From: Ranitomeya imitator
Lineage: Eukaryota
Assembly: GCF_032444005.1 (NCBI RefSeq)
Contig: NC_091283.1
Location: 29,450,001-29,514,000, forward strand
DNA length: 64,000 nucleotides
Reading direction: 5' to 3'
The notes beneath the pieces are model-generated. The model did not search any database. It was not told the origin of the DNA and was given only the letters and a program-made list of their open reading frames with translations. A program made the position numbers and the translations under genes. Below, piece by piece: positions 1 through 62,703 of the stretch; positions within the stretch are counted from its first letter, which is position 1; every line of letters starts with the position of its first letter.

Positions 1-3000
1 CTTACACTCCTCACCTCTGTGAGCATGCTACTAATTTCCATCGTTCAGAGCATATACAACAAATATCACGAGGTGCGTATATGTGCGGGGACGGGGCACA
101 GATCACTGTATGTCATAGATAATAACCATTCCCTTATGGGTCTATAATCATTGCACCTAATACTATTGATTATATTTATTATGCTTAATTGTTTTTGGGT
201 AATTAGACAAACTGCAGATTTGGTGCGGATTTTCACTACAGATTTTATCCTTTGAAATTGGCATCAAAATCTGCATGTAACGTGGATTTCATTGCAGATT
301 TGCTATGAAATCCATAGCAGAAAAAGTCTACGGCCTTTACTTTTCATTAAACTTTTTAAATTTATTTTAGTTGCTCATTTTTACTGTTGTTACCATCTTT
401 AGACAATTGGGGTATGGTCACAGAGTGTTTTACATGAATTTTGAAGCAGATCCGCTTCCAAATCCAATTCAAAAAGTATTTCAAGAGTATATTAAGTGGA
501 TTTTAATGTGGATTTTTAAGTGGATCATTTTCAAAATCCATGTAAGAATAAACATCTGTGTGAGCATGCTCTTATTAGGTTTCGTGCACGTGGTCGTCTT
601 AGGGCTCCATATCATTCGGAGCTGGCATAAGGCTCCCATAAAGGTGCATAATCAGAGCAATAAAGACCTTAGGAACATGTAAAATACTCTGGATACATAA
701 AAATGGCAGCAGAGCCTTCCCACAATATATAGTAGATCTGAACTGTTTTGGACTAGATGACAGTATTTTGGAATATACTCTTTTGACCACAACCAACAAA
801 ACCACTGGTGTGAAAAAAGGATAAAAAAGGTTTATAGCGATCCCATGCATTACTTGACACCATTTCAATCATCTGAGCTACATGATGAAACTGTACAACA
901 CAGGCACTTCACAGGAAAAGAGACAAACTACTATCACAGTTACTGATGATGATTAGACGGCTCCTGTCATACAGTTATCATGTAGAAGAGGGAAACATGT
1001 TTTTACTTGAGTGTTTAAAGTATTCTTTGCACAAATATGTATTTTCTAATCTACAAAATGGACTGACTTATTTTTTTAATTTCTTCTCTCAGGATCTTGT
1101 GAAGAAGGTGCAGGATTCGATTGCCCGGTCAAGTGATCTCGCAAAAGAGATTATCGAGTCGGTTAAAACTGTGCAGAGTTTTGCTGCTGAACAAGAAGAA
1201 GTGAACAGATATGAAGAGTCCCTAAAAAAGACTCACAATCTGCAGATGTGGAGGGACATGACCACAGCTCTGTGTGACCTGTTAATAAGGGTGAATAAAC
1301 ACGTCGTATTCCTGGTGGTTACCGTACATTGTGTATGACGAGATGGCTGCCCATATTCACACTTGTCAGATAGGACATGTCTTCCGGCTTGGCTTCCGCT
1401 GTAGAATTTGCGTGAAATCCAACCACAGTCCACATCTGAGAAGTGCAAATCCACAGCAGAACAGGAGCAGAAATCCAGCCTGACCATCACATTTTTGCTA
1501 AAAATTTTTGCCTCTACATCCACAAGAACATTTGTGAGGTCAGACCCTGATAATGAGGAGATGCCGGGCTCACAATCTCTGTTCTTGGATGGGACTGAAG
1601 TCCGGGCTCTGTACGACCACTTATGTTCCCTCTCCTTGTCTGTATGGACCTTGTGCACTGGGCGCAGTCATGGGGAACAGAAAAGGGCGAACCCCAAACT
1701 GTTCCCACAAATCTGGGAGAATTAAGATTTCCTTTCACTGGAACTTAGAGACCAAGGACAATGCCTGATAACATCCCCATAGCATTGTCCTCCTCCACCA
1801 TCTGCACAATGCCGTTAAGGGGTAACGTTCTCATCTTCAAAGTTAGATGTGGTCTCAGCCACAGCGTGAAAAAACGACCTAAATGTGAGTGATATCTGTG
1901 CTGATGCTGGTGATTAGCTGTGTACCCTGACGATAAAGATGCTTTTCTTCCCTTCAGATTATCAATCGGGGGTCGCAGGTTTCCATATTATGCTATGGAC
2001 ATACATTAATCCTTGAGGGAGAGATGACCACCGGGGCGATGGTGTCCTTCATCATGTACCAGATGAAGTCTAGCAAGTGCATACAGGTACGAGACTAAAG
2101 AAATCACAATGGTGCATGTTTTCCAAAGTCAGTATGTTCACAGCTCTATACACCGCGTAGTGCCAGTTCTCTGGTACTTCAGCCCTGGTCCTATTGAAAT
2201 AAATGGGAGTTGAACATTAGTACACAAAACTGTTCACTACGCAGTGGGATCAGTGGGATACCCCCGGTATAGACACTGCCACGTGACATTGGTGTTGACC
2301 TTTTTTCCTCCATTGTTTTTAGAGCCTTATTCACATGCTCAGTGAGATAACCCATTCCGCAGGAGTCGCCTCCAAGATCTTTCAGTACCTGGATCGGGAG
2401 CCTAAGATCTCCACATCAGGATCACTTTGCCCAAAAGATTTACGTGGTGAATTTGAGTTCAGGAACGTCACATTTTATTATCCGTCCCGTCCAGACACCC
2501 CGGCCGTGCAGGTGAGTGTGCGGAACACCTTGTATTTTATACACCTTACATAATGACAGCTATCTCCTGGCCCCCCACACACGTAGTGGTTTGTGAGCCA
2601 AAAACTACGTGTCTTGTTACTGAGCTGAGCCCAATGATCCTACTCACCATAGAGAGCCGGCGTTCCCATCACATCCACCAGTTAATGTGGCGTACCAATA
2701 GAGCTCATACTGGAATGAAATAGTATTAGGCTGGGCCCCATAAAGAGCTATGTGTGAAGGGGGCTGGCTGACTGCTCATTTCAACAGCCTGGCCAGCCCC
2801 CCTTCTCTATGTGTTGGCTTTGTTAGAGAAGGGGGCTGGCTTAGCTTTCATGTGAGCAGTTTGCTTCTGCACAAATCTCTGCCCTGCTCTGAGATCCGGG
2901 ACCCTTTCCTATGTAAATTAGTAAGTTCCATCCCGAGTCTCATTGTGTGCGTCACTTTGACACCTCACATACTTTCCATACGTGTCCTGTTCTCTCATCT

Positions 3001-6000
3001 CCCCTATCATTTATTTTACGTCTGACAGGACTTATCCTTCAGTCTTCCCCCGGGAAGCGTCACCGCTCTTGTTGGACTCTCAGGAGGGGGGAAGACGACC
3101 TGTGTGTCCCTCCTGGAACGATTCTACGAGCCCCGGAATGGGGAGATCCTTCTCGATGGGAGACCGCTGGCTGAGTACGACCATCAGTATCTGCACAGTA
3201 AGGTAGGACTGGTATCAAAGCGCAGACATCCGGAGCATCGACCGCACACAAACCTCCAGCAGCTGACGGTCATTAATTTACATATTAATGTTTCCAGCTA
3301 TGTTCCTCACTATGTAACCCAGAATATTGTCCGCCCCCAGGATCACCTGCTTTATATCACATATTTCATGGAGCCTTCATATTTATACATGGATGATGTT
3401 ACTGATTGTATACGCTTCATTTATACGATCTGCTGGTTGTGTGCTTAGCGCTCCTTTAGTTCTGGGGCTCATTTATCGCCATTGTCCTTCTGGAAAAGCC
3501 TCGCTCCATTACCACCATTGTCACCAGTATCAGATCGGTGGTGGTGCTGGGTGTCGCCGCTTCGTAGGTCTCGTAGCCCCAGGATGTAGATTGTGTACAG
3601 AGCCGGAACAGCTGGGTACAATGTGTTATGGCCGTTCTCTGTACTGCAGCTCAGCTGCCAATAACGTGAATGTGATCTGAGCTGCACTTCCTGCGACCGG
3701 CCATAACACGGTGTAAGGAGCGGTGGCCTTCATGGCTCTATACACAGTGTACTTGACAAACAGCTTATCGGTGGCGTATCAGTCGGATATTGATGATCTA
3801 TCTCAAGGAAAACCCATCAATTTCATAATTCTGGACATCCCCTTTAATAATAATAAAGTAATCGTTGATCAATCTTTGTAAAGTTATGAATCTTTGTAAT
3901 ATATTCCATTAGTTTATGTTTCTTCCTTCTGTCTTGGTCACCACGCTGAAAGTGCTGGTTTGTCTGCCCAGTTCATGCAGTCTTGGTAGCTGTTATTACA
4001 GCAGAAAAAGGGGCAGCAGCGTTTACCTGCCCCGGTCTCATAGTTTAGTGTGAGGACCCTTGACACGGGGTGTGAGATTACATATCTTGTCAAAAATATT
4101 CACCAATCCCTCATATATTATGTGCTATATATTTTTTTTTGCAATTTCTTTTACAGGGTGCAGCCAGGCCCAACATTTTTTGGCCTTGTAAACGAGGGTG
4201 TCAGCACGGTGATAAAGAAAGAATGAATTAAAATAAGACAATGGAGCATATAACAACGATTCATAACGTTACAAAGACTGATCAATGATTAAACAAATAA
4301 TCATCATTTTATTTCTATAGCGCCAACATATTCCGCAGCACTGTACATTTAGAGGGGACTTGTACAGACAATAGACATTACAACATAACAATAAACACAT
4401 AAATCAACAGATACCAGGAGGAATGAGGGCCCTGCTGCTCGCAAACTTACAAAAAAAATAGTTTAGTTACTTTAATATTAAAGGGGATAGGTTGATATTT
4501 TAATATTTAAAGGGGATGGTTCTTCCTTGGGATAGGTAAAAAATATCCAATTGACGTCCCACACCGCCACCAATAAGCTGTTTGTCAAGATTCATCTATA
4601 TACATAATTGTCTAAGGGGTACTTCCGTCTGTCTGTCTGTCCTACTGTCACGGTTATTCGTTCGCTGATTGGTCTCGGCAGCTGCCTGTCATGGCTGCCG
4701 CGACCAATCAACGACGCGCACAGTCCGAAAGAAAATGGCCGCTCCTTACTCCCCGCACTCACTGCCCGACACCCGCATTCACCCTCCAGTCTGCCCTCAC
4801 ACAGGGTTAATAGCAGCGGTAACGGACCGCGTTATGCTGCGGTGTAATGCAGTCCGTTACCGCTGCTATTAACCCTGTGTGACCAAGTATTTTTACTATT
4901 GACGCAGCCTATGCAGCACCAATAGTAAAAACATTGCATGTTAAAAATAATTAAAAAAATTAAAAATGATGATATACTCACCTACACCGCCTTTCCCGCT
5001 CCTCGCTATGCAAACAGCACGTTCCGGTCGCATGGATGGTGTGGCAGAAGGACCTGCCATGACGTCACGGTCATGTGACCGCGACATCATGACAAGTCCT
5101 GTGCGCCTGCGCGAAAAGGACCTGCCGTAACGTCACGGTCATGTGACCGCTACACAGTCATGTGACCGCGACGTCACGGCAGGTCCTGCACTACAAGGAC
5201 CTTGCCGCTTGCAAGTGGCGGGAGAGTGGCGAGGAGCGGCAAAGGCGGCGGATGGTAAGTATAGCAGGACTTCCAACGGGCCTTCGGAAGGTGAGTATAG
5301 GATTATTTTTTTTTTCCGTCTCTATGCTACGTGGCTCTGTGCTGGGCAATATACTACGTGGCTGGATAATATACTCCGTAACTGGGCAATATACTACGTG
5401 GCTGGGCAATATACTCCGTAACTGAGCAATATACTATGTAACTGTACGTGGCTGGGCAATATACTATGTGACTGGGCAATATACTACGTGACTGGGCAAT
5501 ATACTACGTGACTGGGCAATATACTACGTCACTGGGCAATATACTACGTGGCTGGGCAATATACTACGTGGCTGGGCAATATACTACGTGACTGAGCAAT
5601 ATGCTACGTGGCTGGGCAATATACTACGTGACTGGGCAATATACTACGTGACTGGGCAATATACTACGTGTTTGGGCAATATACTACGTGACTGGGCACT
5701 ATACTACGTGACTGGGCACTATACTACGTGACTGGGCACTAAACTACGTGACTGGGCAATATACTACGTGACTGGGCAATATACTACGTGGCTGGGCAAT
5801 ATACTACGTGGCTGGGCAATATACTACGTGGCTGGGCAATATACTACGTGACTGGGCAATATACTACGTGGCTGGGCAATATACTACGTGACTGGGCAAT
5901 ATACTACGTGACTGGGCAATATACTACGTCACTGGGCAATATACTACGTGGCTGGGCAATATACTACGTGACTGGGCAATATACTACGTGACTGGGCAAT

Positions 6001-7879
6001 ATACTACGTGACTGGGCACTATACTACGTGACTGGGCACTATACTACGTGGCTGGGCAATATACTACGTGACTGGGCAATATACTACGTGACTGGGCAAT
6101 ATACGTGACTGGGCAATATACTACGTGACTGAGCAATATATTACGTGGCTGGGCAATATACTACGTGGCTCTGCTATATACTACGTGGCTGGGCAATATA
6201 CTACGTGGCTGGGCAATATACTACGTGACTGGCCAATATACTACGTGGCTGGGCAATATACTACGTGGACATGCATATTCTAGAATACCCGATGCGTTAG
6301 AATCGGGCCACCATCTAGTAACTTTATAAAGGCTGAGTAATAATGAAATAATAATAAAAAAAAGTTTAGTTACTCTTTAATAGAGATGTGCAACCTCGAA
6401 CTCAAAACAAAAACTCTGAGCACAGATTTCTCCCGGATGTCCATTGCAATGTTTGGCGTTTCGGGGGAAGTCCGGAAAGGGAGAAGAAGAGAGAGATAGA
6501 GGGAGAGAATTTTCTAGCTCAAAAGTTCAGGCCCCCATTGTTTTCATTGGTTCTGGTTCCATTTTGGATACAGTTCTGGTTCCAACCTTTGGAATAAAGT
6601 TCGGGTTGGATACCAGAACCCAAACTTCCACAGGTCCGCTCATCCCTATTCTTTAGGCATGTTAATGAGATATTTTTAATTCTAAGTACAGTAGCTGCAA
6701 ACAATATACTGATAATGTTCCTTCCAGGTGGCGCTGGTTGCCCAAGATCCGGTTTTATTTGCTGGAACAATAAAAGACAACATCACTTACGGACTCATCA
6801 GCAAAAGCAACGAGCAAGTGACAGAGGCAGCAAGGAACGCGAAGGCGGAGAACTTCATCAGCAACCTGGAGCAGGGCTACGACACAAGTAAGTGATACAA
6901 GCATTACATTCCACAGCCGAGATAAAAGATTTGTATTTATATTTTATATACACTATCATTACGGTGCGCAGTGCATTACGTATGAATGCCTTCCTGATGC
7001 AGGACTTAATAGCACTCGCTACGTTGGGTCTCCATGTCTGCAGCAGGCTCTGTAGCTGCGTCATACAGCCAGCATCTGCCACTAACAACAGCGACCAGCT
7101 ACCTCTGATCTCTGCGGTTTAATTATTTACATGCTGCTGTCAATCACTGGTGACATTGTTACTTTCATAAAAGTCTAATTTATCAAAATAAAAAACAAAT
7201 GAACCCACAAAGAGAAAAAATATCAAAATGCCAGATGTTGTTTTTCATCCGTTACTCCATACACAGCACTGGCCACAAATCTAGAGGTCGGAAGGTGTCT
7301 CCTATCAGGAGGCCTCATGTACATTAGGTTCTCCCACTTTCTGGCAAAAAATCATCAGGTTTTTACCGTAACGGTTCTGTCCCCTATCTACATTATTGTG
7401 CAGCATTTTCACGTCTGACTCTTGTTTTGACTTTTTAATCAGATTATTCTTAGATTCTTTGATTTCCTGTTTCCACAGATGTTGGAGATAGCGGGGCTCA
7501 GATGGGGGCCGGGCAGAAGCAGCGCATCGCCCTCGCTCGGGCGCTCGCCCGGAAACCTAAGTTACTTATTCTGGATGAAGCTTCCAGTTGTCTGGATGTA
7601 GAAACGGAGCACGAGGTGCGGTACGACGCTGGCCGGATCGGGGGGCTGCGGTCTGTTACTGTCCAACATTAATATATGTGTCCTCCACAGATCCAGCAGT
7701 CTGTGCAGAATATCCCCGGCCTCTCCGTCCTGATCATCGCTCATCGGCTGCGCACGGTGCGAGAAGCGGACCAGATTCTAGTTCTGGACAGAGGTCGGGT
7801 GGTCGAGCGCGGAAATCACACAGAGCTGGTGAAGAACGAGGAGGGAGCTTACTATAAACTCCTGAAGAACGGCGACTGA
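1..7879 (+). CDS. TAP2: Antigen peptide transporter 2, copy A (5'-partial: exons 4-11)
   Basis: Exons with GT-AG boundaries: <1-72, 1093-1290, 1958-2086, 2323-2511, 3029-3202, 6728-6887, 7479-7615, 7691-7879 (TGA). Sizes 198/129/189/174/160/137 fit the TAP exon pattern and the frame is open throughout. Walker [11 protein letters not shown]-loop AQDPVLF, degenerate signature MGAGQ, Walker B LLILDE and H-loop IAHRL form the TAP2-type combination. Confidence 0.93.
4300..4450 (-). mobile_element. LINE (L2/CR1-clade) 3'-end fragment
   Basis: 'atttctatagcgccaacatattccgcagcactgtaca' resembles the reverse complement of amphibian/fish L2-type 3' ends; a similar piece occurs at ~48885-48925. Confidence 0.4.
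4595..6318 (+). mobile_element. Non-autonomous Helitron carrying a 20-bp minisatellite
   Basis: A|TC 5' end at 4594/4595; subterminal hairpin cccgat-N8-atcggg (6288-6307); CTAG|T 3' end at 6318/6319; no TSD. The same family occurs at 44465-47976. Confidence 0.8.
5343..6267 (+). repeat. 20-bp minisatellite (ctgggcaatatactacgtg[g/a])n inside the Helitron
   Basis: Directly visible tandem array of roughly 45 units. Confidence 0.97.
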
Positions 7880-27830: not shown

Positions 27831-28477
27831 ACTTTTTATGTCTGTTTCATTATTATTACAATGCTAACAATATATTAAAATATGACAAGAAGCAAATATA
27901 AAGATAAAGGTTTTTTTTTTTTTGCAAAACTACATAAATGACAAAAGTGCAGGTAGATGAGCCTTATAAGTGGAATATCTGGCTGCCATTTTCACATTTG
28001 CTGTTGGTGAATGAGGACGCTGGTACGATCGTATCCGGTCTACACAATGCTCTGCGAGCTCAACATCCCGGACTCCAGTCTGATACATGGGAACAAATGA
28101 GCAGAGAATTGTGTGCCGCTCACAGAGCATCGAGTCCACTTCTCGGCTGAGGGTAGGATTAGCAATGGACGGGTACAGCCTCTGAATGTAGTTCTCCTTC
28201 ACTGACAGCAAGCACATCTGCATTGTGTGAACACGGAAAATACTGGTTGGGATGTATTGTAAAGTCACTAGGTAGCAAAACAACATAAAGTTTATGGCTA
28301 CACAGCGCAAAGCAGGGACCTAAGACTGTTTCTGCTGACTGATGTGTCACAATGCAAAAAAACATTTGCTATCAATAACCATATGATCTGATCTCACACG
28401 TCCTCGAGTGGCTGTGTGCAGCGGGTCACACACGCGATGGACACTGAACGGGACACGGCACGAGCGTGGCCTCCTGG

Positions 28478-31400
28478 TCATTCCTTGGTGTCTCCGTTCT
28501 CCCGGTGGAAAGTGCTGTGCTGCTTCTTCCAGAGTCTCCAGTAGACGCCCTCCTGGGCCAGTAAATGTTCATGTCTGCCGGACTCTCTGATCTGACCTCC
28601 TTCCAGAACCAGAATGTGGTCGGCTTTCTCCACGACGTTCAGGCGGTGGGATATCAGCAGTACCGTACGTTTGTTTGGGTTGTCATAAATGGTTCTTTGT
28701 ATCTGGACAGAAAAGTCACAGCACAGAATTACATAAGGACAGTCCGCGCCTCCTCACAGGGGAACACATGAGTGAAAATCTGCTGTACAAAAGCATAGAT
28801 GGAGAATCGAGCAGCACCAGAGGGGACCAGGATGGGTGCGATTCCCACACCAGTCTATTATGTATGTGTGAGTAACAATGAGATAATCGCTGATCGTCGC
28901 GCCTTCCAGCTATTTGGTGCGGCTACTAGTTACAGTCTCCTCGTGGCCAGCATGGCTACTCAGCGTCAGGTCACACGCTCCCTCCATCAAAGCTGAGTGG
29001 GTGTTACGGCAGTGAGGAGACCCTGTCTAGTCCCCACTGCAGCATCGTCACAGAGATAACTACAAGGAGCGGCGCACAGCAATCTGTAAGTCACTTTTCT
29101 CATTCATACATTCATTCATATTTTCATGGAAAACCAGTAATGTATGGAACATGTCGTATGGCGCAATGCTCAGCGGCACAACTGGGGAAACGCTGTGAAC
29201 ATTGCAGCATTATCCTATCGGTTTACTCACCTTGAGTTCACTTTCAGAGTCCAGGGAGCTGCTGACATCATCCAGTATAAGGACCTTGGGATCCCTCACC
29301 AGGGCCCGCGCTAACGCCACTCTTTGTTTCTGACCCCCAGACAAAAGGGCGCCTTTTTGTCCAGCACCTAAAATACAGCACATGACTATTATCTCCACAC
29401 ACGAGTCATTCATTTATTGCTGCGAGAATACAAGACCGTCCTTCAGAGTGTGCAAAGCGCGCAGCCGCACAGAGAACATCAGCCACACAGAGAACATCAG
29501 CCACACAGAGAACATCAGCCACACAGAGAACATCAGCCGTACAGAGAACATCAGCCGCACAGAGAACATCAGCCGTACAGAGCACATCAGCCACAGAGAG
29601 AACATCAGCCACGCAGAGCACATCAGCCACACAGAGCACATCAGCCACACAGAGCACATCAGCCGTACAGGGAACATCAGCCGTACAGAGAACATCAGCC
29701 ATACAGAGAACATCAGCCAAATAAGACACATCAGCCACACAGAGAACATCAGCCACACAGAGAACATCAGCCACAGAGAGAACATCAGCCACACAGAGAA
29801 CATCAGCCGTACAGAGAACATCAGCCAAATAAGACACATCAGCCACACAGAGAACATCAGCCACACAGAGAACATCAGCCACACAGAGCACATCAGCCGT
29901 ACAGAGAACATCAGCCGTACAGAGAACATCAGCCGCACAGAGAACATCAGCCACAGAGAGAACATCAGCCACACAGAGCACATCAGCCACACAGAGCACA
30001 TCAGCCGTACAGAGCACATCAGCCGCACAGAGAACATCAGCCATACAGAGAACATCAGCCAAATAAGACACATCAGCCACACAGAGAACATCAGCCACGC
30101 AGAGCACATCAGCCGCACAGAGCACATCAGCCGAGCAGAGCACATCAGCCGCACAGAGAATATCAGCCACGCTGAGCACATCAGCCACGCAGAGAACATC
30201 AGCCGCACAGAGAACATCAGCCACGCAGAGCACATCAGCCACGCAGAGCACATCAACCGCACAGAGAACATCAGCCGCACAGAGCACATCAGCCACGCAG
30301 AGTACATCAGCCGCACAGAGAACATCAGCCACGCTGAGCACATCAGCCACGCAGAGAACATCAGCCACACAGAGAACATCAGCCACGCAGAGAACATCAG
30401 CCGCACAGAGAACATCAGTCACGCAGAGCACATCAACCGCACAGAGAACATAGGCCGCAGAGAGAACATCAACCACACAGAGAACATCAGCCGCACAGAG
30501 AACATCAGCCGCACAGAGCACATCAGCCACGCAGAGCACATCAACCGCACAGAGAACATCAGCCACACAGAGAACATCAGCCACACAGAGAACACCAGCA
30601 GTACAGAGCACATCAGCCAAGTAAGACACATCAGCCACACAGAGAACATCAGCCAAATAATACACATCAGCCGCACAGAGAACATCAGGAGCACAGAGAA
30701 CATCAGCCATACAAAGAAATCAGCCGCACAGAACACATCAGTCGTTCCTATGTGACCCCTATATGACCACCATGCATTGTAATGCAGACTGTATAGCGGT
30801 ATTATTCACATACCGTATAGAACTATTATTATATGGAGCAGTTTCGGTCACTGCAGGTATCTGAGCACTGTATGGGGGAATAGACACTGTATATCTCCTG
30901 TGCTGTACAATATATTATTCCTGCAATGTATGGTGGTGGCGGCACTATAGAGTTTATATATAGTTGAGGCATTTTCCTCACATTGTTATTATGCTCATGT
31001 ATGGCACTAGTATGTAGGCACTAAACATTACACCAAATAGGGTAATAACAGAAACTACAACCCAGGGCAGAATGTAATAACCCTTGTGTGACCAGACGCT
31101 TCCATCACGCCTCGTATATCATCTGTCCTACACCCACCTGTCTTGTACCCGTCCACCATGGTGGAAATAAAATCATGTGCGTTTGCTGCGGCTGCCGCGT
31201 TCTCCACGGACGACTGAGAAACGTGTCCCAAACCGTAAGAGATATTGTCATCTAATGGCCGGGCAGTGAGGACGGGCTCCTGACTCACCACGGACACCTG
31301 CAATGAAGGAAGCGAGGTAGGACAGAGGACAGTGACCACGTGAGACGCCACCAGCGGCACATGATGATGATGATGGAGTCCGCTTCCAGTCTCACTGCTC

Positions 31401-32146
31401 TGGGCTTCATGGTGTGATGAAGTCGAAAGCAATAATTCTGCATGAGCAAAGTCTGCTCAACGCAGCGGCCACCATGGTTTTCCATCACTGCATTTGGCAC
31501 TGATGTGCAGTAGTGTGACCTTACATTTATGGCTATGGTGAACGTTGTGCACCGGGCATCACATCATATTTATTGGACGGTCATCATGATTTCTGCACCA
31601 TGTTATCGAGACAATGCAGGTTTCTCATTTATTTTTCTTTAGATTTTTTTATATACTTTTTCCCCAATTTTCAGGCTTATCGTAAAAAGAAAAATAAATA
31701 AAAAATATTCATTGTTCATTTTAAGCAATTTTTCCAGAGCAGATTTATGAAAACTAACGTTTCATACGTTTCATACTCCAGTCGATAAAAAAAAATCTTT
31801 GCATTAGTATTCTGAGCTATATTTATTTCATAATTTGTATAATTGTTCTGCTGTCCTAAAATCAGAAGATGAAATCTAGGACTATTTGCACCATTTTGTG
31901 GCCTTAGGCTGGCCTCACACTCAGCGTATGAAAATATGGTCCGTATATTACGGCCGTAATACGCTGAAAAGTCCCGAAAATAGTGGTCCGTAGCTCCTCC
32001 ATAGGCAGGGTGTGTCACCGTTTTTTGCGCATGGCATCCTCCGTATGTAATCCGTATGGCATCCGTACTGCGTGTTTTTATCGCAGGCTTGCAAAACCGA
32101 CATACGGCTATACAAGGGATCCATGTGTAAAAAAAAAACATATATA

Positions 32147-32186
<40 letters not shown>

Positions 32187-35100
32187 TTAGGTCCATATAT
32201 ATTTGGACAGAGACAACATTTTTCTAATTTTGGTTATAGACATTACCACAATGAATTTTAAACAAAACAATTCAGATGCAGTTGAAGTTCAGACTTTCAG
32301 CTTTCATTTGAGGGTATCCACATTAAAATTGGATGAAGGGTTTAGGAGCTTCAGCTCCTTAACATGTGCCACCCTATTTTTAAAGGGACCAAAAGTACTT
32401 GGACAATTGACTCCAAGGCTATTTCATGGACAGGTGTGGGCAATCCATTCACTATGTCATTCTCAATAAAGCAGATAAAAGGCCTGGAGTTGATTTGCGG
32501 TGTGGTGCTTGCATTTGGAAGGTTTTGCTGTGAAGTAAACTTGCGGTCAAAGGAGCTCTCCATGCAGATGAAACAAGCCATCCTTAAGCTGCGAAAACAG
32601 AAAAAACCCATCTGAGAAATTGCTAAAATATTAGGAGTGGCAAAATCTACAGTTTGGTACATCCTGAGAAAGAAAGCAAGCACTGGTGAACTCATCAATG
32701 CAAGAAGACCTGGGCGCCCACGGAAGACAACAGTGGTGGATGATCACAGAATAATCTCCATGGTGAAGAGAAACCCCTTCACAACAGCCAACCAAGTGAC
32801 CAACACTCTCCAGGAGGTCGGCGTATCAATATCCAAATCTACCATAAAGAGAAGACTGCATGAAAGTAAATACAGAGGGTTCACTGCACGGTGCAAGCCA
32901 CTCATAAGCATCAAGAATAAAAAGGCTAGACTGGACTTTGCTAAAAACATCTAAAAAAGTCAGCACAGTTCTGGAATAACATTCTTTGGACAGATGAAAC
33001 CAAGATCAACCTCTACCAGAATGATGGAAAGAGAAAAGTATGGCGTAGGCGTGGTACAGCTCATGATCCAAAGCATACCACATCATCTGTAAACCACGGC
33101 GGAGGCAGTGTGATGGCTTGGGCATGCATGGCTGCCAGTGGCACTGGGTCACTAGTGTTTATTGATGATGTGACACAGGACAGAAGCAGCCGAATGAATT
33201 CTGAGGTATTCAGAGACATACTGTGTGTTCAGATCCAGCCAAATGCAGCCAAACTGATTGGTCGTCGTTTCATACTACAGATGGACAATGACCCAAAACA
33301 TAAAGCCAAAGCAACCCAGGAGTTTATTAAAGCAAAGAAGTGGAATATTCTTGAATGGCCAAGTCAGTCACCTGATCTCAACCCAATTGAGCATGCATTT
33401 CACTTGTTAAAGACTAAACTTCAGACAGAAAGGCCACAAACAAACAGCAACTGAAAACCACCGCAGTGAAGGCCTGGCAGAGCACCAAAAAGGAGGAAAC
33501 ACAGCGTCTGGTGATGTCCATGAGTTCAAGACTTCAGGCAGTCATTGCCAACAAAGGGTTTTCAACCAAGTACTAAAAATGAACATTTTATTTAAAATTA
33601 TTGAATCTGTCCAATTACTTTTGGTCCCTTTAAAAACAGGGTGGCACATGTTAAGGAGCTGAAACTCCTAAACCCTTCATCCAATTTTAATGTGGATACC
33701 CTCAAATGAAAGCTGAAAGTCTGAACTTCAACTGCACCTGAATTGTTTTGTTTGAAATTCATTGTGGTAATGTCTATAACCAAAATTAGAAAATTGTTGT
33801 CTCTGTCCAAATATATATGGACCTAACTGTATATAATGTCAGTAGACACATATACAGTGGGGCAAAAAAGTATTTAGTCAGTCAGCAATAGTGTAAGTTC
33901 CACCACTTAAAAAGATGAGAGGCGTCTGTAATTTACATCATAGGTAGACCTCAACTATGGGAGACAAACTGAGAAAAAAAAAATCCAGAAAATCACATTG
34001 TCTGTTTTTTTAACATTTTATTTGCATATTATGGTGGAAAATAAGTATTTGGTCAGAAACAAAATTTCATCTCAATACTTTGTAATATATCCTTTGTTGG
34101 CAATGACAGAGGTCAAACGTTTTCTGTAAGTCTTCACAAGGTTGCCACACACTGTTGTTGGTATGTTGGCCCATTCCTCCATGCAGATCTCCTCTAGAGC
34201 AGTGATGTTTTTGGCTTTTCGCTTTGCAACACGGACTTTCAACTCCCTCCAAAGGTTTTCTATAGGGTTGAGATCTGGAGACTGGCTAGGCCACTCCAGG
34301 ACCTTGAAATGCTTCTTACGAAGCCACTCCTTCGTTGCCCTGGCGGTGTGCTTTGGATCATTGTCATGTTGAAAGACCCAGCCATGTTTCATTTTCAATG
34401 CCCTTGCTGATGGAAGGAGGTTTGCACTCAAAATCTCACGATACATGGCCCCATTCATTCTTTCATGTACCCGGATCAGTCGTCCTGGCCCCTTTGCAGA
34501 GAAACAGCCCCAAAGCATGATGTTTCCACCACCATGCTTTACAGTAGGTATGGTGTTTGATGGATGCAACTCAGTATTCTTTTTCCTCCAAACACGACAA
34601 GTTGTGTTTCTACCAAACAGTTCCAGTTTGGTTTCATCAGACCATAGGACATTCTCCCAAAACTCCTCTGGATCATCCAAATGCTCTCTAGCAAACTTCA
34701 GACGGGCCCGGACATGTACTGGCTTAAGCAGTTGGACACGTCTGGCACTGCAGGATCTGAGTCCATGGTGGCGTAGTGTGTTACTTATGGTAGGCCTTGT
34801 TACATTGGTCCCAGCTCTCTGCCGTTCATTCACTAGGTCCCCCCGCGTGGTTCTGGGATTTTTGCTCACCGTTCTTGTGATCATTCTGACCCCACGGGGT
34901 GGGATTTTGCGTGGAGCCCCAGATCGAGGGAGATTATCAGTGGTCTTGTATGTCTTCCATTTTCTAATTATTGCTCCCACTGTTGATTTCTTCACTCCAA
35001 GCTGGTTGGCTATTGCAGATTCAGTCTTCCCAGCCTGGTGCAGGGCTACAATTTTGTTTCTGGTGTCCTTTGACAGCTCTTTGGTCTTCACCATAGTGGA

Positions 35101-37363
35101 GTTTGGAGTCAGACTGTTTGAGGGTGTGCACAGGTGTCTTTTTATACTGATAACAAGTTTAAACAGGTGCCATTACTACAGGTAATGAGTGGAGGAAAGA
35201 GGAGACTCTTAAAGAAGAAGTTACAGGTCTGTGAGAGCCAGAAATCTTGATTGTTTGTTTCTGACCAAATACTTATTTTCCACCATAATATGCAAAAAAA
35301 ATGATAAAAAAACAGACAATGTGATTTTCTGGATTTTTTTTTCTCAGTTTGTCTCCCATAGTTGAGGTCTACCTATGATGTAAATTACAGACGCCTCTCA
35401 TCTTTTTAAGTGGTGGAACTTGCACTATTGCTGACTGACTAAATACTTTTTTGCCCCACTGTATGTATATATATTAATATTTCATACAGCGCGATATAGC
35501 AGAAAGCCGGTAATTCAATTACTGGCTTTTGCTATCTCCTTCCTAAACCCGACATGATATGAGACCCGGTTTACATACAGTAAACCATCTCATATCCCCA
35601 TTTTTTTTTGCATATTCCACACTACTAATGTTAGTAGTGTGTATGTGCAAAATTTGGCCATTCTAGCTAGTAAATTAAGGGGTTAAATGGCGGAAAAAAT
35701 TGGCGTGGGCTCCCGCACAATTTTCTCCGCCAGAGTAGTAAAGCCAGTGACTGAGGGCAGATATTAATAGCCTGGAGAGGGTCCACGGTTATTGGTCCCC
35801 CCCTGGCTAAAAACACCTGCCCCCAGCCACCCCAGAAAAGGCACATCTGGAAGATGCGCCTATTCTGGCACTTGGCCACTCTCTTCCCATTCCCGTGTAG
35901 CGGTGGGATATGGGGTAATGAAGGGTTAATGCCACCTTGCTATTGTAAGGTGACATTAAGCCTAATTAATAATGGAGAGGCGTCAATTATGACACCTATC
36001 CATTATTAATCCAATACTAGTAAAGGGTTAAAAAAATACACAAACACAATATTATAAATTATTTTAATGAAATAAAAACAAAGGTTGTTGTAATATTTTA
36101 TTGAACGCCCAATCCAATGACTGAAGACCCTCTATCTGTAACAAAAAAACCATAATAAACCAACAATATACTTACCTTCCGCAGATCTTTAAAGTCCAAC
36201 GATGTAAATCCATCTGAAGGGGTTAAAATATTTTGCAGACACGAGCTCCGCTAATGCAACGTTGCTCATGTCTGCAAAACCCCAGGGAATGAAGGTAAAG
36301 TAGGTCAATGACCTATATTTAGCTTCATTTGCGGTGAGGCGCCCTCTGCTGGCTGTTCCTAGATCGTGGGAACTTTCCTAGAAAGCTCCCTGGCTCGAGA
36401 TCATAAGAGGGCGCCCTCTGCTGGTTGTCCTCATATGAACTCGAGCCAGGGAGCTTTCTAGGAAAGTTCCCACGATCTAGGAACAGCCAGCAAAGGGCGC
36501 CTCACCGCAAATGCAGGTAAATATAGGTCATTGACCTACTTTACCTTCATTCCCTGGGGTTTTGCAGACATGAGCAACGTTGCATTAGCAAAGCTCGTGT
36601 CTGCAAAATATTGTAACCCCTTCAGATGGATTTACATCGTTGGACTTAACAGATCTGCGGAAGGTAAGGATATTGTTGGTTTATTATGTTTTTTTTGTTA
36701 CAGAACGAGGGTCTTCAGTCATTGGATTGGGCGTTCAATAAAATATTACAACAACCTTTGTTTTTATTTCATTAAAATAATTTTTAATAATGTGTTTGTG
36801 TATTTTTTTAACCCTTTACTAGTATTGGATTAATAATGGATAGGTGTCATAATTGACGCCTCTCCATTATTAATCTGGCTTAATGTCACCTTACAATAGC
36901 AAGGTGGCATTAACCCTTCATTACCCCATATCCCACCGCTACACGGGAATGGGAAGAGAGTGGCCAAGTGCCAGAATAGGCGCATCTTCCAGATGTGCCT
37001 TTTCTGGGGTGGCTGGGGGCAGGTGTTTTTAGCCAGGGGGGCCAATAATCATGGACCCTCTCCAGGCTATTAATATCTGCCCTCAGTCACTGGCTTTACT
37101 ACTCTGGCGGAGAAAATTGTGCGGGAGCCCACGCCAATTTTTTCCGCCATTTAACCCCTTAAGTTACTAGCTAGAACGGCCAAATTTTGCATATACACAC
37201 TACTAACATTAGTAGTGTGGAATATGCCAAAAAAAAAATGGTGATATGAGATGGTTTACTGTATGTAAACCAGGTCTCATATCATGTCGGGTTTTAGGAA
37301 GGAGGAAGCAAAAGCCGGCAATTGAATTACCAGCTTTAAAGCTATCTAGCGCTGGAAGAAATA

Positions 37364-37420
<57 letters not shown>

Positions 37421-40400
37421 CTCACTGACATATATATATATATATATACCTATTCTATGTGTACACATTTATTATACCTATTCTATTGTAAGCTGTCAGT
37501 GTGATTTTACTGTACACCGCACTGAATTGCCGGCTTTCCTCTCTAACACCGCTGCGTATTCCTCGCAAGTCACACTGCTGGTCCGTGTGTAATCCGTATT
37601 TTTGGGGCTTCCATAGACTTTCATTGATGTTTTATTTGCGCAATACGGTGACAAACGCAGCATGCTGCTATTTTCTACGGCCGTAGAAAGCCGTATAATA
37701 CTGATCAGTTTAATACGGCAGATAGGAGCAGGGGCATAGAGAATAATTGTGCCGTTTGTTTTGCGAGTTTTACGGACGTAGTTTCTGCGCTCTTACGTCC
37801 GTAAAACTCGCAAGTGTGAAGCCGGCCGTAGACGTAATAAATCTGCCTGGAAGTTGTCGGCTGCACATCCTCACATCAGTTTTGGTGAGTGATGTGCAGA
37901 GTGAATATTTGTGACTTTTTGTGCGAGTTGCAACTATTTGGAACTCACTTTAATGCAAAAACTGGTGGCCATAAATGTAATAAATGTGGTCCATAGTGTT
38001 ACCCTAGAATAGAATTATTTGCCATTTTTATTACCTACCAAACATTTTGATGTTACCTCTTTTTGATAGAAATTATATTTTATGTATTTTTAATTTATTT
38101 TTATTAGTTACTTTTATTTTAATTGCCTGAACCTCACTCTTAGAAAAAAAAGTGCCTATAAAACAAGCACTTTTTCAATTCCCTGTTTATTAAAATTTGC
38201 AACAGTTTTTGAGATATTAACACTTTTCTTTTCGGCTCGTTACCTAGGAGACCGACCACCACTGCTGTCCAGTTTGTAAGCACTGTGCTGAAACTGGACA
38301 GGATTTGGAGGTAACAGCGCGCTCCACCGATCCTGGACAGCTTCAGTGCAGCACTGACATGTTACACAGAAAAGAGCTTGTAAACACTGAACGTTTGGCA
38401 GCGGTGGTCGGTCTCCTAGGCAACAAGCTGTAGACAAACATGTTAATATGTCAAGAACGACTGCAAATTTTAATATACAGTAAATTGCAAAAGTGCAATA
38501 CCCAATAATGTCCTTTCATGAAAATGGGAATAATCCGTTCCTTTAAGTAGTTAATTATTTCAATAATTACACAGTATGATGAGGAGCTTTCACTTTAGAT
38601 GTGGGTGGCTGCAATATCCCCTCCGACATGCACGCATGGGGGTCTCACCATTCTCCGGTAATACTCGTTGTCATATTCGGATACCGGTTTCCCGTCCAGG
38701 AGGATTTGTCCTTGTTGTGGTTGATAAAACTTCAGCAGCAGCTGCACCACGGTGGATTTACCAGCATCACAAGCGCCAACCAAAGCCGTCACCTGCCCCT
38801 CACGTAGGTCAAAAGAGACATCCTAGAGGATTATAACAATATGTATCAGTCCATACAGGTGTATCAGTGTTAGAGAAACCACCGTCTGAGTCTGAACATC
38901 ATCCGGTCACTTCCGTACCTGTAGAGCCGGGGTGTCCTTCCGTTTCGGGTAGGAGAATGTGACATTCTTGAACTGGACGTGTCCTTTAAGATGAGCCAGC
39001 TTGAGGTTTCCTGGTGGTGGCAGCTGCGGAGTCCGGTCCATGTACTCAAACACTTTTTCGGATGATCCTACGGCTTTTTTTACATTTGGGTACAAGCTCT
39101 GCAGCACCTGGATGAAGAGGCGGAGGGGATTATTAAAGGAGAGGTCAGAGTGGCAGGGCAGCAATGTCACTTACAGATGCGGCATTCACCATCTTGATGG
39201 GCGGCCGCTATATTATATCTGAGTGTTCAGCCATGGTGTGCACAATGGGGTCTGCACATGTCCTCCATGAGTCCTGCTCTAATGAATAGGACAGGTGGAT
39301 GATGCCATCTGATGGTGGACACGTCCCAGGATACCTGTAGATGTGACGGCATCGCTGCCGCTCACCCCCTGATGCCATCTATCAGGCTGACACATTGTGC
39401 CACATGGTGCCCACATCTCAAGCTCCCCTTCTCCTGGGTCGTGACTGCCAACTGCACCCCCTATACCATACACAATAAATGCAGCAGCGATCTGACCTCT
39501 AGGGATGAGACCCCCTATATAGCAGCACATAGAGCTGCACGCCATGCCCAATACAGAGGTCACCTTGTGTACATGCAGCCGCTCACCCCCACAGCCTCCG
39601 TGAACTGCAGCTCGTACAGGACAAACGACACCAGCTCCCCTCCGCTGACCTCGCCGTACGTCACTAACCGGCCACCAAAGTACAGGATGGCCACCTTCAG
39701 CACGAGCCCGGACATCTGTGGGGAAAAACACTGAACGTTAGTGTCCCAATCTGTGCCACCCCCATAATTCACTGCTGGGGCGGTGCAGGATGTGTGGTTC
39801 TCTTTATTAAAGGATTCTTTCTAGGGCCCCTTTAAAGAGCTGATTAGAGAGGACACCTAGAGTCAGATTCTGAGAACGTGCCTCTAAAGTCACCTATTGA
39901 AATGAATGGACGCTCATGAATTCATTGTCTATGGGACTGCTACGAGTCACCGCTGCGGACAGTGACTGGCTGAGTCGGCATTTTCTGCTATTCCTGCCAG
40001 TCGAGATGGGGCTAGAAAGTATTCGGAGCAGAGCTATGGAGGGGAACGGTGGTAAGGCATTTTAAAACCAGTGTCAGTCCTTGTTACAACTCATGGCTCC
40101 TCGCGGGACGACCTCGGAGAACACCCAGTACTCACACTGTTGGCCACCGAGTTGAAACCGTAGGCCATGGCCTCCACCTTGTTGAGCGCGTAGATGTCCT
40201 GCAGCTTGGCCTCGTAGCGCTGACATTCTCCATCTTCGTTAGCGAAGCTCCGCACCGTCTTCATGTTGGAGAAGATCTCCAGCACCACCTGATTGGCTGC
40301 CGAAAGGGATTTCTGGACCTTAACAGCTGAACTCTGCAGAAAAGAAGGAACGTTATCTGGTTGGTCTCCTTGTGGACTCACACGTACGCTGCTTTTGTAT

Positions 40401-43400
40401 GTTAGGGTGTATCCAGACATGGCTGCCGTGGTGCTGTCCTTGGTACTCACTGGCAAACGCAGCAGTTTTTTGTTTTTTGTACCCAAAGTTGCACCAAAGA
40501 CCAACGTCTGCTCATCCCGCAAAAAACAAGTCCTCACACAGATCCATAGATGGAAAATGAAAACGTTTCGGGGGCTCAGACAACGGTGACATGATCCTGA
40601 ATATGATTTATAAAGCTCTAAATATATTTTAGCCACTAAAATATATAAAAAATGTAATCAATCTGACCCGGCCGGCCATTTTACTCTGTCAGTTTAATTG
40701 CATAATATAAAGGAAACCACAAAACAATGGTGGAGTTGTGTTTTTTTTTTCTCACTATTTCACTGCACTTGGAATTTTTTCCTATTTTTCTGTAAATTAT
40801 AAGGTAAAGTGAACGGTGTAATTCCAAAGTACAACTCGTCCTCCTAAAAACAACTTCTTGGAAGAAGAAGAAAAAAAATACAAAAACATGAAAAAAACAA
40901 AGCTGCCCGGTGGGTAAGGTGCAATTTTAAGGAGTTTTAAGATCTCCGCTTGCAGTCAGTACATTCTGAATTGAATGTAAGGAGCCATGAGTCTGGAGCT
41001 CAGGATTGGGGAGAGACTTGTTGCTGCGCAACTGGAACAAAGCCTCAGCAGTGTCACTATCATACGCTATCATCGGTCTCACCTGGGAAAAGGCTCCCGA
41101 TAGTTTTGGGACGATTGTGATCACCAGGAGGCAGAGCATAGTGAAGAGCGTCAGCTTAGCGGACAAGCTGAACATGAAGATGACCAGGAATATCAACCTC
41201 ATCAGGTACCACATCAGCAGGCTGAGGTCGTGGCTCAGCGCCTCGCTCATGGCTGTGATGTCACTCGTAAGGCGAGACGTGATGTCACCTGGAAAGGAAG
41301 CGCCATGTTTAGGAGACAGGACGCGATCAGCGAGGCCCCGTCAGACGTCGTCTGTGCGCACATCACCTGTGGACTCCGTGTCGAAGAACGTGATGTCCTG
41401 CGTCAGGATGGTGTGCAGCAGCCTCCCCTGGGTCTGGGTGTGCACCAGGCTCATGGTCACGTTGTACACACAGTCACAGAGGAACTCGGTCACAGCGCTG
41501 CACGCAACAAAATCACCATTACTGATAGGAAAACAAGATGTACTGTACAGACAGTGTGCGCTGAGCAGAAATGGGCCCTGTGCACGATATGTACCGACTA
41601 CGGGGAGAAGGGGGGATGATGCTGCAGTATCTCTGTGTCTGTGAGAAGGGAGATGGGGAGAAGGGGGGATGATGCTGCAGTATCTCTGTGTCTGTGAGAA
41701 GGGAGATAGGGAGAAGGGGGGATGATGCTGCAGTATCTCTGTGTCTGTGAGAAGGGAGATGGGGAGAAGGGGGGATGATGCTGCAGTATCTCTGTGTCTG
41801 TGAGAAGGGAGATGGGGATAAGGGGGGATGATGCTGCAGTATCTCTGTGTCTGTGAGAAGGGAGATGGGGTGAAGGGGGGATGATGCTGCAGTATCTCTG
41901 TGTCTGTGAGAAGGAAGATGGGAAGAAGGGGGGATGATGCTGCAGTATCTCAGTGTCTGTGAGATGGGGAGAAGGGGGGATGATGCTGCAGTATCTCTGT
42001 GTCTGTGAGATGGGGAGAAGGGGGGATGATGCTGCAGTATCTCTGTGTCTGTGAGATGGGGAGAAGGGGGGATGATGCTGCAGTATCTCTGTGTCTGTGA
42101 GATGGGGAGAAGGGGGGATGATGCTGCACAACCAACATCGGCGTCCTCACCTGCAGAGTGTGATCAGACTTATCGCCATGATGGAGTTCCAGAATATGGA
42201 GGGATCTTTCTTCTCTTGGATCCAGTCTGTCATCTTTCCTGTGTACGATGGCAGAACCATTTCACCTGGTTACACGGGACACAAGGAGCCACACGTTATA
42301 ATCATGGGCCGATCATCCACACTAGTATTTAATATAGCAGAGGAGCATACTGGACTGTGCTAGCTAAGGGGATTGTCCAGTATCGCTGTTAGAGGGGATC
42401 CTTGACATTATGAAGATGTTGGACCTAAGTGGTCATCTGGGTACAATGGCTATTGTGAACAGTAAGTGTTTCATTTCTCTGCAGTGCCCCTACAGGATAA
42501 ATGAAGCATTACACAAATACAGTTCAAATGAATGGTTCATCTGTGTAACGCGGGTCCTCCAGATCAAGAGCTGCTCTATGTAACCACTCTGTGCTCCGAA
42601 CGACGAGGGTCCTGAACAGAGGACCCCCTTATTTAGTCAGAATTCCCCAATAGGGTGTATGGAAATGGGATTTAGAGTGATGCTGTTAAGTCATTTTTAC
42701 TTTACAATGAATACCATAAAAACCATTTTACCACACTGAATTTTTTCCCCGATTTTTTTACTACATTATGCGGTAAAATTAATGACTAAAACTACTGTAC
42801 CGCACCGTACTAGTCCTGCAATAAACAAGCCCTCATATGGCCATGGGGACAGAAAGGTAAAAAAAAGTTTGGGCTCTTGGAACAAAAAACGTAAGCGCAA
42901 AAACAAAAATTGACAGCGTCCCTAAGAGACTGAGGGGCAGATACCAGAGAACAATACTCACTCCATGAAGACAGCACCAAAAACACGGACACCCACAGGA
43001 ACCGCCACCCGTAGGGCCTCAGAAGGTCCAGTAATCTCCACACTGAGGCCGGTGACTCCGTCACATCATCCTCGTCTTCATCCTCCAGGAAGAGCTGGTG
43101 CCAGACGAGGGTGGACGTCACCGTCATGAGGTACGAGTAGAAGAACAGGTCTGCGTGGCCGGATCGATGCAGGAGGTTTGTGCTGGTCCGTGGTAGCAGG
43201 ACAGCAGTGATGGTCGCACAACATGGCACCAGCAGGGTGAGGACGGCAGAGGACAGCAGTAATGGATTCTCCTGTAACCAGGGGGGCAGTTTTGATATTC
43301 GTCCCACGCCAAGTGTCAAGATAACCAGTCGTACCAGGCCCAGTACCCATGTCTGGAGGAGGTTTGGGGGCAAAAGAAGGGTCAGCAGGTGCAAAGTGGC

Positions 43401-58495: not shown

Positions 58496-58529
<34 letters not shown>

Positions 58530-61365: not shown

Positions 61366-61402
<37 letters not shown>

Positions 61403-62481: not shown

Positions 62482-62703
62482 GTAGGACTGGTATCAAAGC
62501 GCAGACATCTGGAGCATCAACCGCACAGAAGCCTCCAGCAGCTGACGGTCATTAATTTATATATTAATGTTTCCAGCTATGTTCCTCACTATGTAATCCA
62601 GAATATTGTCCGCCCCAGGATCACCTGCTTTATATCCCATATTTCATGGAGCCTTCATATTTATACATGGATGATGTTACTGATGTATACACTTCATTTA
62701 TAC
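59245..62703 (+). repeat. Paralogous copy of window positions 1-3426 (segmental duplication)
   Basis: Exons and introns align continuously, with substitutions and small indels, until the CR1 insertion at 62704. Confidence 0.95.

Follow-up and report, generated by a model that had tools for sequence, protein, structure and literature searches.

Natural specificity variants of the peptide transporter TAP, represented by the rat cim alleles and the chicken haplotypes, are allelic and mainly affect the C terminus of the transported peptide. In the rat, this C-terminal effect runs through a few membrane-domain residues of TAP2, for which positions 217, 218, 262, 265, and 266 have been listed (PMC3930506), while a cryo-EM study credits the difference between the cim-a and cim-u alleles to M218E (PMC11161800). 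The human A374D variant likewise changes transport specificity, and the peptide-binding regions of TAP2 have been mapped to residues 301-389 and 414-433 (PMC3431710). In the peptide-bound cryo-EM structures of the human transporter, the C-pocket residues of TAP2 are R210, M218, L266, N269, and R273; at the other end of the peptide, L377 touches the N terminus through van der Waals forces, and R373 sits on the rim of the N-terminal pocket (PMC11161800). Besides such alleles, lineage-specific duplications of TAP2 within the class I core have been described: the Tap2-Tap1-Tap2 gene order of two Leptobrachium frogs (PMC10210626), the duplicate TAP2 of Pleurodeles, recent duplications of antigen-processing genes in salamanders, and the salmonid TAP2a/TAP2b pair. 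Evidence for recombination and for selection in the substrate-binding region exists for these ectotherm duplicates too, and salamander TAP2 carries positively selected sites within the 301-389 region (PMC7883663).

The DNA of Ranitomeya imitator that we analyzed (the window; 64 kb in total) is part of the anuran MHC class I region. It contains the 3' half of one TAP2 gene (copy A, plus strand), a TAP1 gene on the minus strand, and the 5' two-thirds of a second TAP2 gene (copy B, plus strand), all in a single gap-free stretch with zero N (Table 1). Hence, two TAP2 genes flank TAP1 in this frog, whereas humans possess a single TAP2, and the gene order is that published for Leptobrachium. The two copies are true tandem paralogues that have diverged by about 5% in introns and exons alike; compared with the other ectotherm duplicates, the divergence of this pair is focused in a 17-base patch and in the exon that follows it. 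No credible match to PSMB8 was present in the window when a proteasome-TAP2 fusion protein was used as the tblastn query.

Table 1. Positions of TAP features in the 64-kb window
Feature	Position	Strand	Remarks
Copy A, end of preceding exon	1..72	+	human about 292-315; 2 non-synonymous differences from copy B, one being L for a widely conserved Pro (about 301)
Copy A, cluster exon	1093..1290	+	66 codons, human TAP2 316-381; coupling-helix to TM5 part
Cluster of differences	1265..1281	+	7 of 17 bases differ from copy B; codons equivalent to human 373-378, TALCDL
Copy A, splice donor of cluster exon	1291..1296	+	gtgaat; copy B gtgagt, outgroup L001 gtgagg; G at +5 in both
Copy A, next exon	1958..2086	+	human 382-424, TM5-TM6; 10 differences from copy B in 129 bases, 7 non-synonymous
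Copy A exon	2323..2511	+	human 425-487; 1 difference from copy B; in 183-base identical run 2376-2558
Copy A, Walker A exon	3029..3202	+	GLSGGGKTT
Copy A, Q-loop region exon	6728..6887	+	frame open
Copy A, signature and Walker B exon	7479..7615	+	degenerate ABC signature GAGQKQR; Walker B LILDEAS
Copy A, last exon	7691..7879	+	H-loop AHRL; stop codon 7877-7879
TAP1 gene, between the TAP2 copies	28466..42263	-	TM-domain exon closest to human TAP1; canonical LSGGQKQR signature; Walker B ending DD
TAP2 copy B	54213..62481	+	first coding exon to Walker A exon; remainder beyond window
Copy B, cluster exon	60355..60552	+	counterpart of 1093..1290
Copy B, counterpart of cluster	60527..60543	+	encodes conserved RALYLL

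Each exon was searched separately against the databases. The best solved-structure match of the cluster exon was human TAP2, with E values of 1.7e-8 for copy A and 2.8e-11 for copy B, compared with about 1.4e-4 for ABCB9 and about 2-5e-3 for TAP1, and the named database matches to the TAP2 exons were antigen peptide transporter 2. The exon aligns without a gap to human residues 317-380 (5U1D, 8T46, and related structures), so that exon residue i corresponds to human TAP2 residue i+315 (5u1d_B). Judged by its likeness in the membrane domain, its nucleotide-binding domain (NBD) motifs, and its linkage to TAP1, the gene that carries the cluster is TAP2 (ABCB3). Copy A also shares with human TAP2 the degenerate signature, the Walker B Glu, the H-loop His, and a position next to TAP1 in the MHC.

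The copy A tract at 1264-1281 (ACAGCTCTGTGTGACCTG) has a single counterpart in the window, which is the copy B tract at 60526-60543 (AGAGCTCTCTACCTCCTA). The two copies align over ~3.4 kb when shifted by 59,244 bases, with 164 mismatches in 3,334 ungapped columns (4.9%), and no other 17 bases of the entire alignment are as dense in mismatches as those that hold the seven at 1265, 1272, 1274, 1275, 1276, 1277, and 1281. At least seven mismatches in 17 bases were reached with p = 0.0088 when all columns were permuted (20,000 permutations) and with p = 5e-5 when the permutation was confined to the 756 exon columns. The flanks of the cluster are identical between the copies for 40 bases upstream and 13 bases downstream, and the reading frame is intact across the exon in both of them, the translation of the copy B exon ending in ...WRDMTRALYLLLIR. 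A wider island of 85 bases (1221-1305) with 11 A/B differences was not significant by itself (p 0.17). Both observations on which the first-pass annotation had been built were thereby upheld: the seven substitutions in 17 nt are real, as re-reading and aligning the two copies showed, and the exact, gap-free alignment of the exon to 5u1d_B places the replacement of RALYLL by TALCDL at human TAP2 R373-L378.

Four of the seven differences change amino acids (1265, 1274, 1276, and 1277), and the DNA of two other frogs (L001 and L003) shows each of these to be derived in copy A; the synonymous differences at 1272, 1275, and 1281 are not polarizable, so that polarity is assignable for four of the seven changes only. 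The protein comparison points in the same direction. Our collection of 210 long TAP2 proteins, none of them from R. imitator, came from two profile searches, of which the first returned mostly teleosts and added little. Position 373 is R in 166 of these proteins and T in 17, position 376 is Y in 200 and C in two, and position 377 is L in 182; Leu, Val, or Ile occupies position 377 in nearly all of them, and zero carry D or E there. The motif TALCDL was absent from all 210 proteins, the copy A exon, used as the query of a word search, recovered one frog fragment only, itself carrying RALYLL, and the exact look-up of the 130-amino-acid genomic ORF spanning the cluster exon returned no database record. 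Copy B retains the RALYLL motif found throughout the vertebrates and identical in human TAP2, while copy A has T373, C376, and D377 in place of the R, Y, and L of human TAP2 and of nearly all vertebrates. When Spea, Rhinophrynus, caecilians, salamanders, and the coelacanth are used for comparison, copy A is derived at positions 297, 301, 373, 376, 377, 385, 391, 418, and 422, and copy B at 328, 399, 442, and 534 only. Copy B also keeps the conserved contact residues R373 and L377 and has N and R at positions 269 and 273 (counted back by hand; exon 59098-59316); copy A deviates from this set with T373 and D377, its own positions 269 and 273 falling outside the window. As far as its sequence can tell, copy A is thus a TAP2 by descent that departs from the conserved peptide-backbone contact set.

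The burst of changes in copy A rewrites two residues that belong, by homology, to the few of TAP2 touching the start of the peptide, and it could alter peptide selection. The first-pass annotation had gone further; it held that residues 374 and 380 set the C-terminal preference and that the new Asp might favor peptides with basic C termini. For human TAP2, A374D indeed alters specificity (PMC3431710), and an Asp in this turn of TM5 can hence have such an effect; a role for 374 and 380 in the rat found no confirmation in the cim papers, which name M218E or residues 217, 218, 262, 265, and 266. Since L377 and R373 are located at the N-terminal end of the peptide and the C-pocket lies elsewhere (PMC11161800), a shift toward basic C termini is not what the structure predicts, and this part of the proposal did not hold. 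Part of the change in copy A may even be functionally silent, because the human R373A variant leaves MHC-I surface levels unaffected (PMC11161800).

The explanation that we favor, and for which we consider the case to be about evenly balanced when it is taken as a whole, views copies A and B as paralogues of which copy B has kept the ancestral peptide-binding residues and copy A is the derived copy. The difference in TM5, where R373, Y376, and L377 (human numbering) became T, C, and D, is a real one, and comparison with the homologous, peptide-bound human TAP places residues 373 and 377 in the wall of the cavity next to the N-terminal pocket. The rim around the N-terminal end of the peptide is therefore predicted to be more acidic and less hydrophobic; the preference at peptide positions 1-3 or the efficiency of transport could shift, with no new C-terminal preference expected. 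Further radical changes of copy A (P301L, L385R, E418K, and Y422C) fall into the biochemically mapped peptide-binding stretches as well, and TAP2-A could pair with the single adjoining TAP1 to form a transporter of altered selectivity. The cluster itself would be a tract-type feature of a gene-conversion mosaic between TAP2 sequences, either as an island spared from homogenization because it is selected, or as a short stretch copied in from another, more diverged TAP2 that is absent from the window; seven independent selected point mutations would be an unlikely origin.

The most serious competitor of this explanation, although we deem it unlikely, treats copy A as a paralogue that has become redundant and is on its way to losing its function. 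The cluster would then be a complex mutation of no or slightly deleterious effect, produced by a single multi-nucleotide event or by a few hits and tolerated since copy B does the work, and no new specificity would have arisen. An Asp in TM5 and the loss of a Tyr conserved at 95% could simply cripple the copy A protein, and the derived radical replacements Y376C, L377D, L385R, P301L, and E418K affect near-invariant sites, in keeping with decay. So is the splice donor of the cluster exon, which a G to A change at 1295 (+5) has weakened relative to copy B and L001, and so is the finding of the TALCDL motif in no other database protein. The A/B dN/dS ratio of 0.49, alike for membrane and NBD exons, is not significantly below 1 on the basis of 27 changes; the same gross ratio makes no case for positive selection. 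It is, on the other hand, in line with both copies being kept as coding sequence. Speaking against decay, the visible exons of copy A (its 5' half lies outside the window) have neither stops nor indels. Between the copies, 2,643 intron bases contain 22 indel events, with examples at 1489-1513 and 1889-1910, while the 762 coding bases that A and B share contain none (P = 0.0018). All ATPase motifs of copy A are likewise intact, comprising Walker A, the Q-loop, the degenerate signature, Walker B with its catalytic Glu, and the H-loop His. Moreover, its non-synonymous changes are not evenly spread, as pN in the NBD exons is 0.007-0.015 and the changes are concentrated in the mapped peptide-binding stretches; the exon at 1958..2086 contributes the B to A replacements L385R, M391I, V399I, E418K, N421K, Y422C, and R424Q. 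Judged on its visible exons, copy A seems to be maintained as a gene.

The cluster might also owe nothing to a tract event and might consist of seven independent point substitutions that accumulated because diversifying selection acted on the side of TM5 in contact with the peptide. The positions of 373 and 377 among the peptide contacts of human TAP, the positively selected salamander sites in 301-389 (PMC7883663), and the excess of non-synonymous change in the next exon (1958..2086) are all compatible with this possibility. However, the seven differences include three synonymous ones crowded into a single stretch of 10 bases, for which the synonymous rate calculated outside of the cluster predicts about 0.2-0.3, and the overall dN/dS is below 1; we therefore regard this origin as improbable. 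The A/B differences are, in addition, over-dispersed along the alignment (index 1.6-1.9, p <= 0.001), a result that holds without the cluster, and a run of 183 bases of A/B identity (2376-2558) is unusually long (p = 0.016). The synonymous differences and the over-dispersion together argue for a tract-like or mosaic origin over selected point mutations alone, although the over-dispersion could also reflect an uneven mutation rate and exon constraint instead of gene conversion.

A tract-like origin had been suggested by the first-pass annotation in the form of a micro-conversion; fully spelled out, a TAP-like donor would have brought in an Asp that favors basic C termini, comparable to rat cim-a or human A374D. 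The tract is denser than chance, includes synonymous sites, and has identical flanks, gene conversion seems to be active at the locus, and A374D, which alters the specificity of human TAP, is only one helical step away (PMC3431710). But the donor search yielded nothing: the 64-kb window contains on neither strand an 18-mer with three or fewer mismatches or a 19-mer with four or fewer, copy B does not carry the tract, and the homologous TAP1 segment is unrelated to it. A TAP-like donor is also unlikely in view of the 210 TAP2-family proteins, zero of which have an acidic residue at 377, and the contacts made by L377 and R373 at the N-terminal end of the peptide, with the C-pocket formed by 210, 218, 266, 269, and 273 (PMC11161800), run counter to the proposed effect on the C terminus. 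Micro-conversion by itself is a candidate origin of the tract; the full version, in which a donor-derived Asp shifts selectivity toward basic C termini, we judge to be quite improbable. Template switching fared no better, the best match within 3 kb of either copy having 6 mismatches in 19 bases. A 13-base inverted identity at 7816-7828 in the last exon of copy A, 6.5 kb away, was dismissed as a chance match, since the sequence there codes for a motif conserved in the NBD and the bases on either side do not match. Small-inversion and compensated-frameshift readings, inspected by eye, offered nothing simpler.

Another possibility is an assembly artefact, either because the seven letters were introduced in consensus building or polishing, or because the two haplotypes of one TAP2 were misplaced in tandem. 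MHC regions are heterozygous and repeat-rich, and one study distrusted an earlier R. imitator assembly (PMC10210626). We nevertheless consider an artefact very improbable: no N interrupts the stretch that holds TAP1 and the two copies, the changes are all in-frame, stop-free substitutions, which is not the usual pattern of long-read errors, two other frogs have independently been reported to show the Tap2-Tap1-Tap2 order (PMC10210626), and the A-type letters, being absent from copy B, cannot have been made by cross-polishing between the paralogues.

The favored explanation, an altered-selectivity copy A with a cluster of tract-type origin, can be extended to a bolder proposal that we put forward tentatively and consider rather doubtful, namely that the frog maintains two functionally distinct transporters, built from a single TAP1 and either of the tandem TAP2 genes. 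Having gained an acidic residue at 377, lost the Arg at 373, and acquired the charge changes L385R, E418K, N421K, and R424Q in the cavity, TAP2-A would select N-terminal residues unlike those selected by TAP2-B, and selection would have kept the patch against homogenizing conversion. Such a pair would resemble the rat cim alleles and human A374D in that a few membrane-domain residues change the peptides transported; it would differ from the rat system in that paralogues rather than alleles are involved and that the changes map by homology to N-terminal contacts. With divergence islands and MHC class I micro-conversion the locus has in common a sharp, short tract including synonymous sites, homogenized surroundings, and over-dispersed differences; no donor was found at the frog locus, and the likeness suggests these models and demonstrates neither.

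Even if copy A is inert, the locus shows conversion and divergence shaping a young MHC duplicate. If the two-transporter reading is true, it would represent a natural tuning of N-terminal rather than C-terminal specificity in TAP. A functional copy A would offer a natural test of whether the rim of the N-pocket tunes peptide selection, and of whether amphibians widen their peptide supply by means of paralogous transporters.

Using full-length TAP2 proteins as tblastn queries, we placed three genes in the window, which is vertebrate sequence with introns and frog-type repeats and contains no N: two TAP2 genes, designated copy A and copy B, and a second ABC transporter gene on the opposite strand. 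A membrane-domain exon of the latter matches human TAP1 (E 1e-7), with ABCB9 reaching only 0.002 and TAP2 giving no match; the gene has a canonical signature (LSGGQKQR) and a Walker B motif ending in DD, features by which we assign it to TAP1. With a TAP2 gene on either side, this gives the order TAP2-TAP1-TAP2, an arrangement also described for two Leptobrachium frogs in their core class I region (PMC10210626). TAP1 is convergent with copy A and divergent from copy B. A PSMB8-like coding sequence was not found anywhere in the window by tblastn with a proteasome-TAP2 fusion protein as the probe. Large intergenic minisatellite arrays at 20448-26966 and 45124-47926 were also present, and such arrays account for the marked GC skew between 20 and 28 kb.

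Coordinates of genes and repeats in the window
Feature	Position	Strand	Method
Copy A, 3' half of TAP2 gene	exons 1-72, 1093-1290, 1958-2086, 2323-2511, 3029-3202, 6728-6887, 7479-7615, 7691-7879	+	tblastn
TAP1	~42263 to 28466	-	tblastn
Copy B, 5' two-thirds of TAP2 gene	54213-62481	+	tblastn
Minisatellite, 38-base unit	20448-21415 and 22631-24064		
Minisatellite, 39/77-base unit	24541-26966		
Tandem array inside one TAP1 intron, 18-base unit, 71 copies	29462-30741		
Minisatellite, 20-base unit, ~138 copies	45124-47926		

Positions 1-3405 of copy A align with 59245-62680 of copy B, with 164 mismatches in 3,334 ungapped columns (4.9%; introns 5.35%). At 1265-1281 (60527-60543 in copy B) the copies differ at seven of 17 bases, exactly those written down in the first-pass annotation, and the reading frame stays intact (TALCDL in copy A, RALYLL in copy B). 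This is the densest 17-base window of the whole alignment (permutation p = 0.0088 for all columns, 5e-5 for exon columns); the cluster is real and statistically non-random. Homology between the copies ends in the intron following the Walker A exon of copy B, at a repeat-rich insertion (62680-64000) whose repeated catagttaca-type motifs probably mark it as a transposable element.

The exon carrying the cluster aligns without gaps to residues 317-380 of human TAP2 (5u1d_B; phmmer against solved structures), which places the six codons at R373-A374-L375-Y376-L377-L378, as the first-pass annotation had correctly proposed. Genomic contigs from two other frogs, L001 and L003, align across this exon and served as outgroups. 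Their codons (AGA GCT TTG TAT CTT CTC and AGA GCT TTA TAC CTG CTG, respectively) indicate that copy A is derived at the four amino-acid-changing sites 1265, 1274, 1276, and 1277, while the synonymous third-position sites 1272, 1275, and 1281 are not polarisable, since copy A equals one of the two outgroups at each. Among 210 long TAP2 proteins, ranging from sharks to mammals, position 373 is R in 166 and T in 17, position 376 is Y in 200 and C in two, and position 377 is L in 182, with V, I, G, Y, T, or S in the remainder and D or E in none. T373 is therefore a variant that occurs and is tolerated in nature; C376 is found rarely, and D377 has no precedent in this sample. In the ranges searched, with each exon used separately, the protein collection contained neither a second carrier of TALCDL nor any TAP2 protein of the same species.

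How might such a cluster have arisen? Differences between the copies are over-dispersed along the alignment (index of dispersion 1.6-1.9, p ≤ 0.001, also when the cluster is removed), and a 10-base part of the cluster contains three synonymous differences, against about 0.2-0.3 expected there from the synonymous rate elsewhere; both findings argue against seven independent selected hits. A 183-base identical run at 2376-2558 (61612-61794 in copy B; p = 0.016), covering most of an exon and 47 intron bases, likely reflects recent gene conversion between the copies, and 2301-2550 contains only a single difference. A mosaic of this kind suggests that TAP2 sequences have undergone gene conversion with one another. 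If so, the cluster could be an island spared by homogenisation, or a short import whose donor would be a more divergent TAP2 sequence elsewhere. For the micro-conversion suggested in the first-pass annotation, the window supplied no donor: the cluster 18-mer has no other match with three or fewer mismatches, a 19-mer none with four or fewer on either strand, the best match within 3 kb of either copy has six mismatches, and the homologous segment of TAP1 is unrelated. An inverted 13-base identity between 7816-7828 (GNHTELV codons of a conserved NBD motif in copy A's final exon) and 1265-1277 has differing flanks and is probably due to chance. Alternatively, the cluster may be a de novo complex mutation.

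Several features of copy A speak for a working gene. Indels number 22 events in 2,643 intron bases and none in 762 bases of shared coding sequence (P = 0.0018), no visible exon contains a stop codon, and the Walker A motif, Q-loop, TAP2-type degenerate signature, Walker B motif with its Glu, and H-loop are intact. Other features are neutral or count against this, namely dN/dS, the splice donor, and the derived sites of copy A listed further below. The dN/dS ratio between the copies is 0.49 (Nei-Gojobori; 10 synonymous and 17 non-synonymous differences), similar in membrane and NBD exons and not significantly below 1. Immediately downstream of the cluster exon, the splice donor is gtgaat in copy A (1291-1296) and gtgagt in copy B (60553-60558); with A at +5, where copy B and outgroup L001 have G, the copy A donor is predicted to be weaker.

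With Spea, Rhinophrynus, caecilians, salamanders, and coelacanth as reference, the derived residue is found in copy A at 297, 301 (where a conserved Pro is lost), 373, 376, 377, 385 (Leu replaced by Arg), 391, 418 (Glu by Lys), and 422 (Tyr by Cys), and in copy B only at 328, 399, 442, and 534. The codon at 28-30 (difference at 29; 59273 in copy B) encodes Leu in copy A and Pro in copy B, human, and most vertebrates; the mapped peptide-binding region begins with this site (human ~301). The exon following the cluster (1958-2086 versus 61192-61320; TM5-TM6, human 382-424) differs at 10 of its 129 bases, a rate well above that of the introns; seven of the differences are non-synonymous, among them the charge changes L385R, E418K, N421K, and R424Q (from B to A). 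Across the three membrane-domain exons, 10 of the 13 non-synonymous differences fall inside the cross-link-defined binding stretches 301-389 and 414-433. This pattern would fit either relaxed constraint or a paralogue gaining a different selectivity; we consider the latter roughly twice as likely, because the reading frame is clean and the ATPase motifs are intact.

In peptide-bound cryo-EM structures of human TAP, TAP2 L377 is in van der Waals contact with the N terminus of the peptide (PMC11161800). R373 touches the backbone of the second peptide residue in two of three peptides and forms, with TAP1 E301, the narrow entrance to an acidic N-pocket; surface MHC-I is unaffected by R373A (PMC11161800). 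The peptide C terminus is gripped by TAP2 R210, L266, N269, and R273, with M218 lining a hydrophobic cleft, and carriage of basic C termini by rat cim-a is ascribed to M218E (PMC11161800); residues 217, 218, 262, 265, and 266 are listed as rat specificity determinants (PMC3930506). Human A374D does change specificity, as the first-pass annotation stated, and charge changes in the Arg cluster around 374 in TM5 are hypothesised to impair transport (PMC3431710). Judged by the human structures, the changed residues face the cavity, not lipid, and lie beside the peptide's N-terminal end, with the C-pocket elsewhere. Hence, the shift toward basic C termini envisaged earlier is not predicted by current structures. 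Loss of Arg at 373 and gain of Asp at 377 would instead shift the charge at the rim of the N-pocket, itself already acidic, further toward the negative, and we predict from homology that any effect would concern peptide positions 1-3 or overall efficiency, not C-terminal preference.

Collectively, the sequence data portray the cluster as a patch of derived residues at peptide contacts, located in the younger-looking of two tandem TAP2 copies. Duplicated TAP2 is an already known kind of system in the MHCs of ectotherms; what is unusual here is that a conserved contact on the N-terminal side is occupied by an acidic residue.
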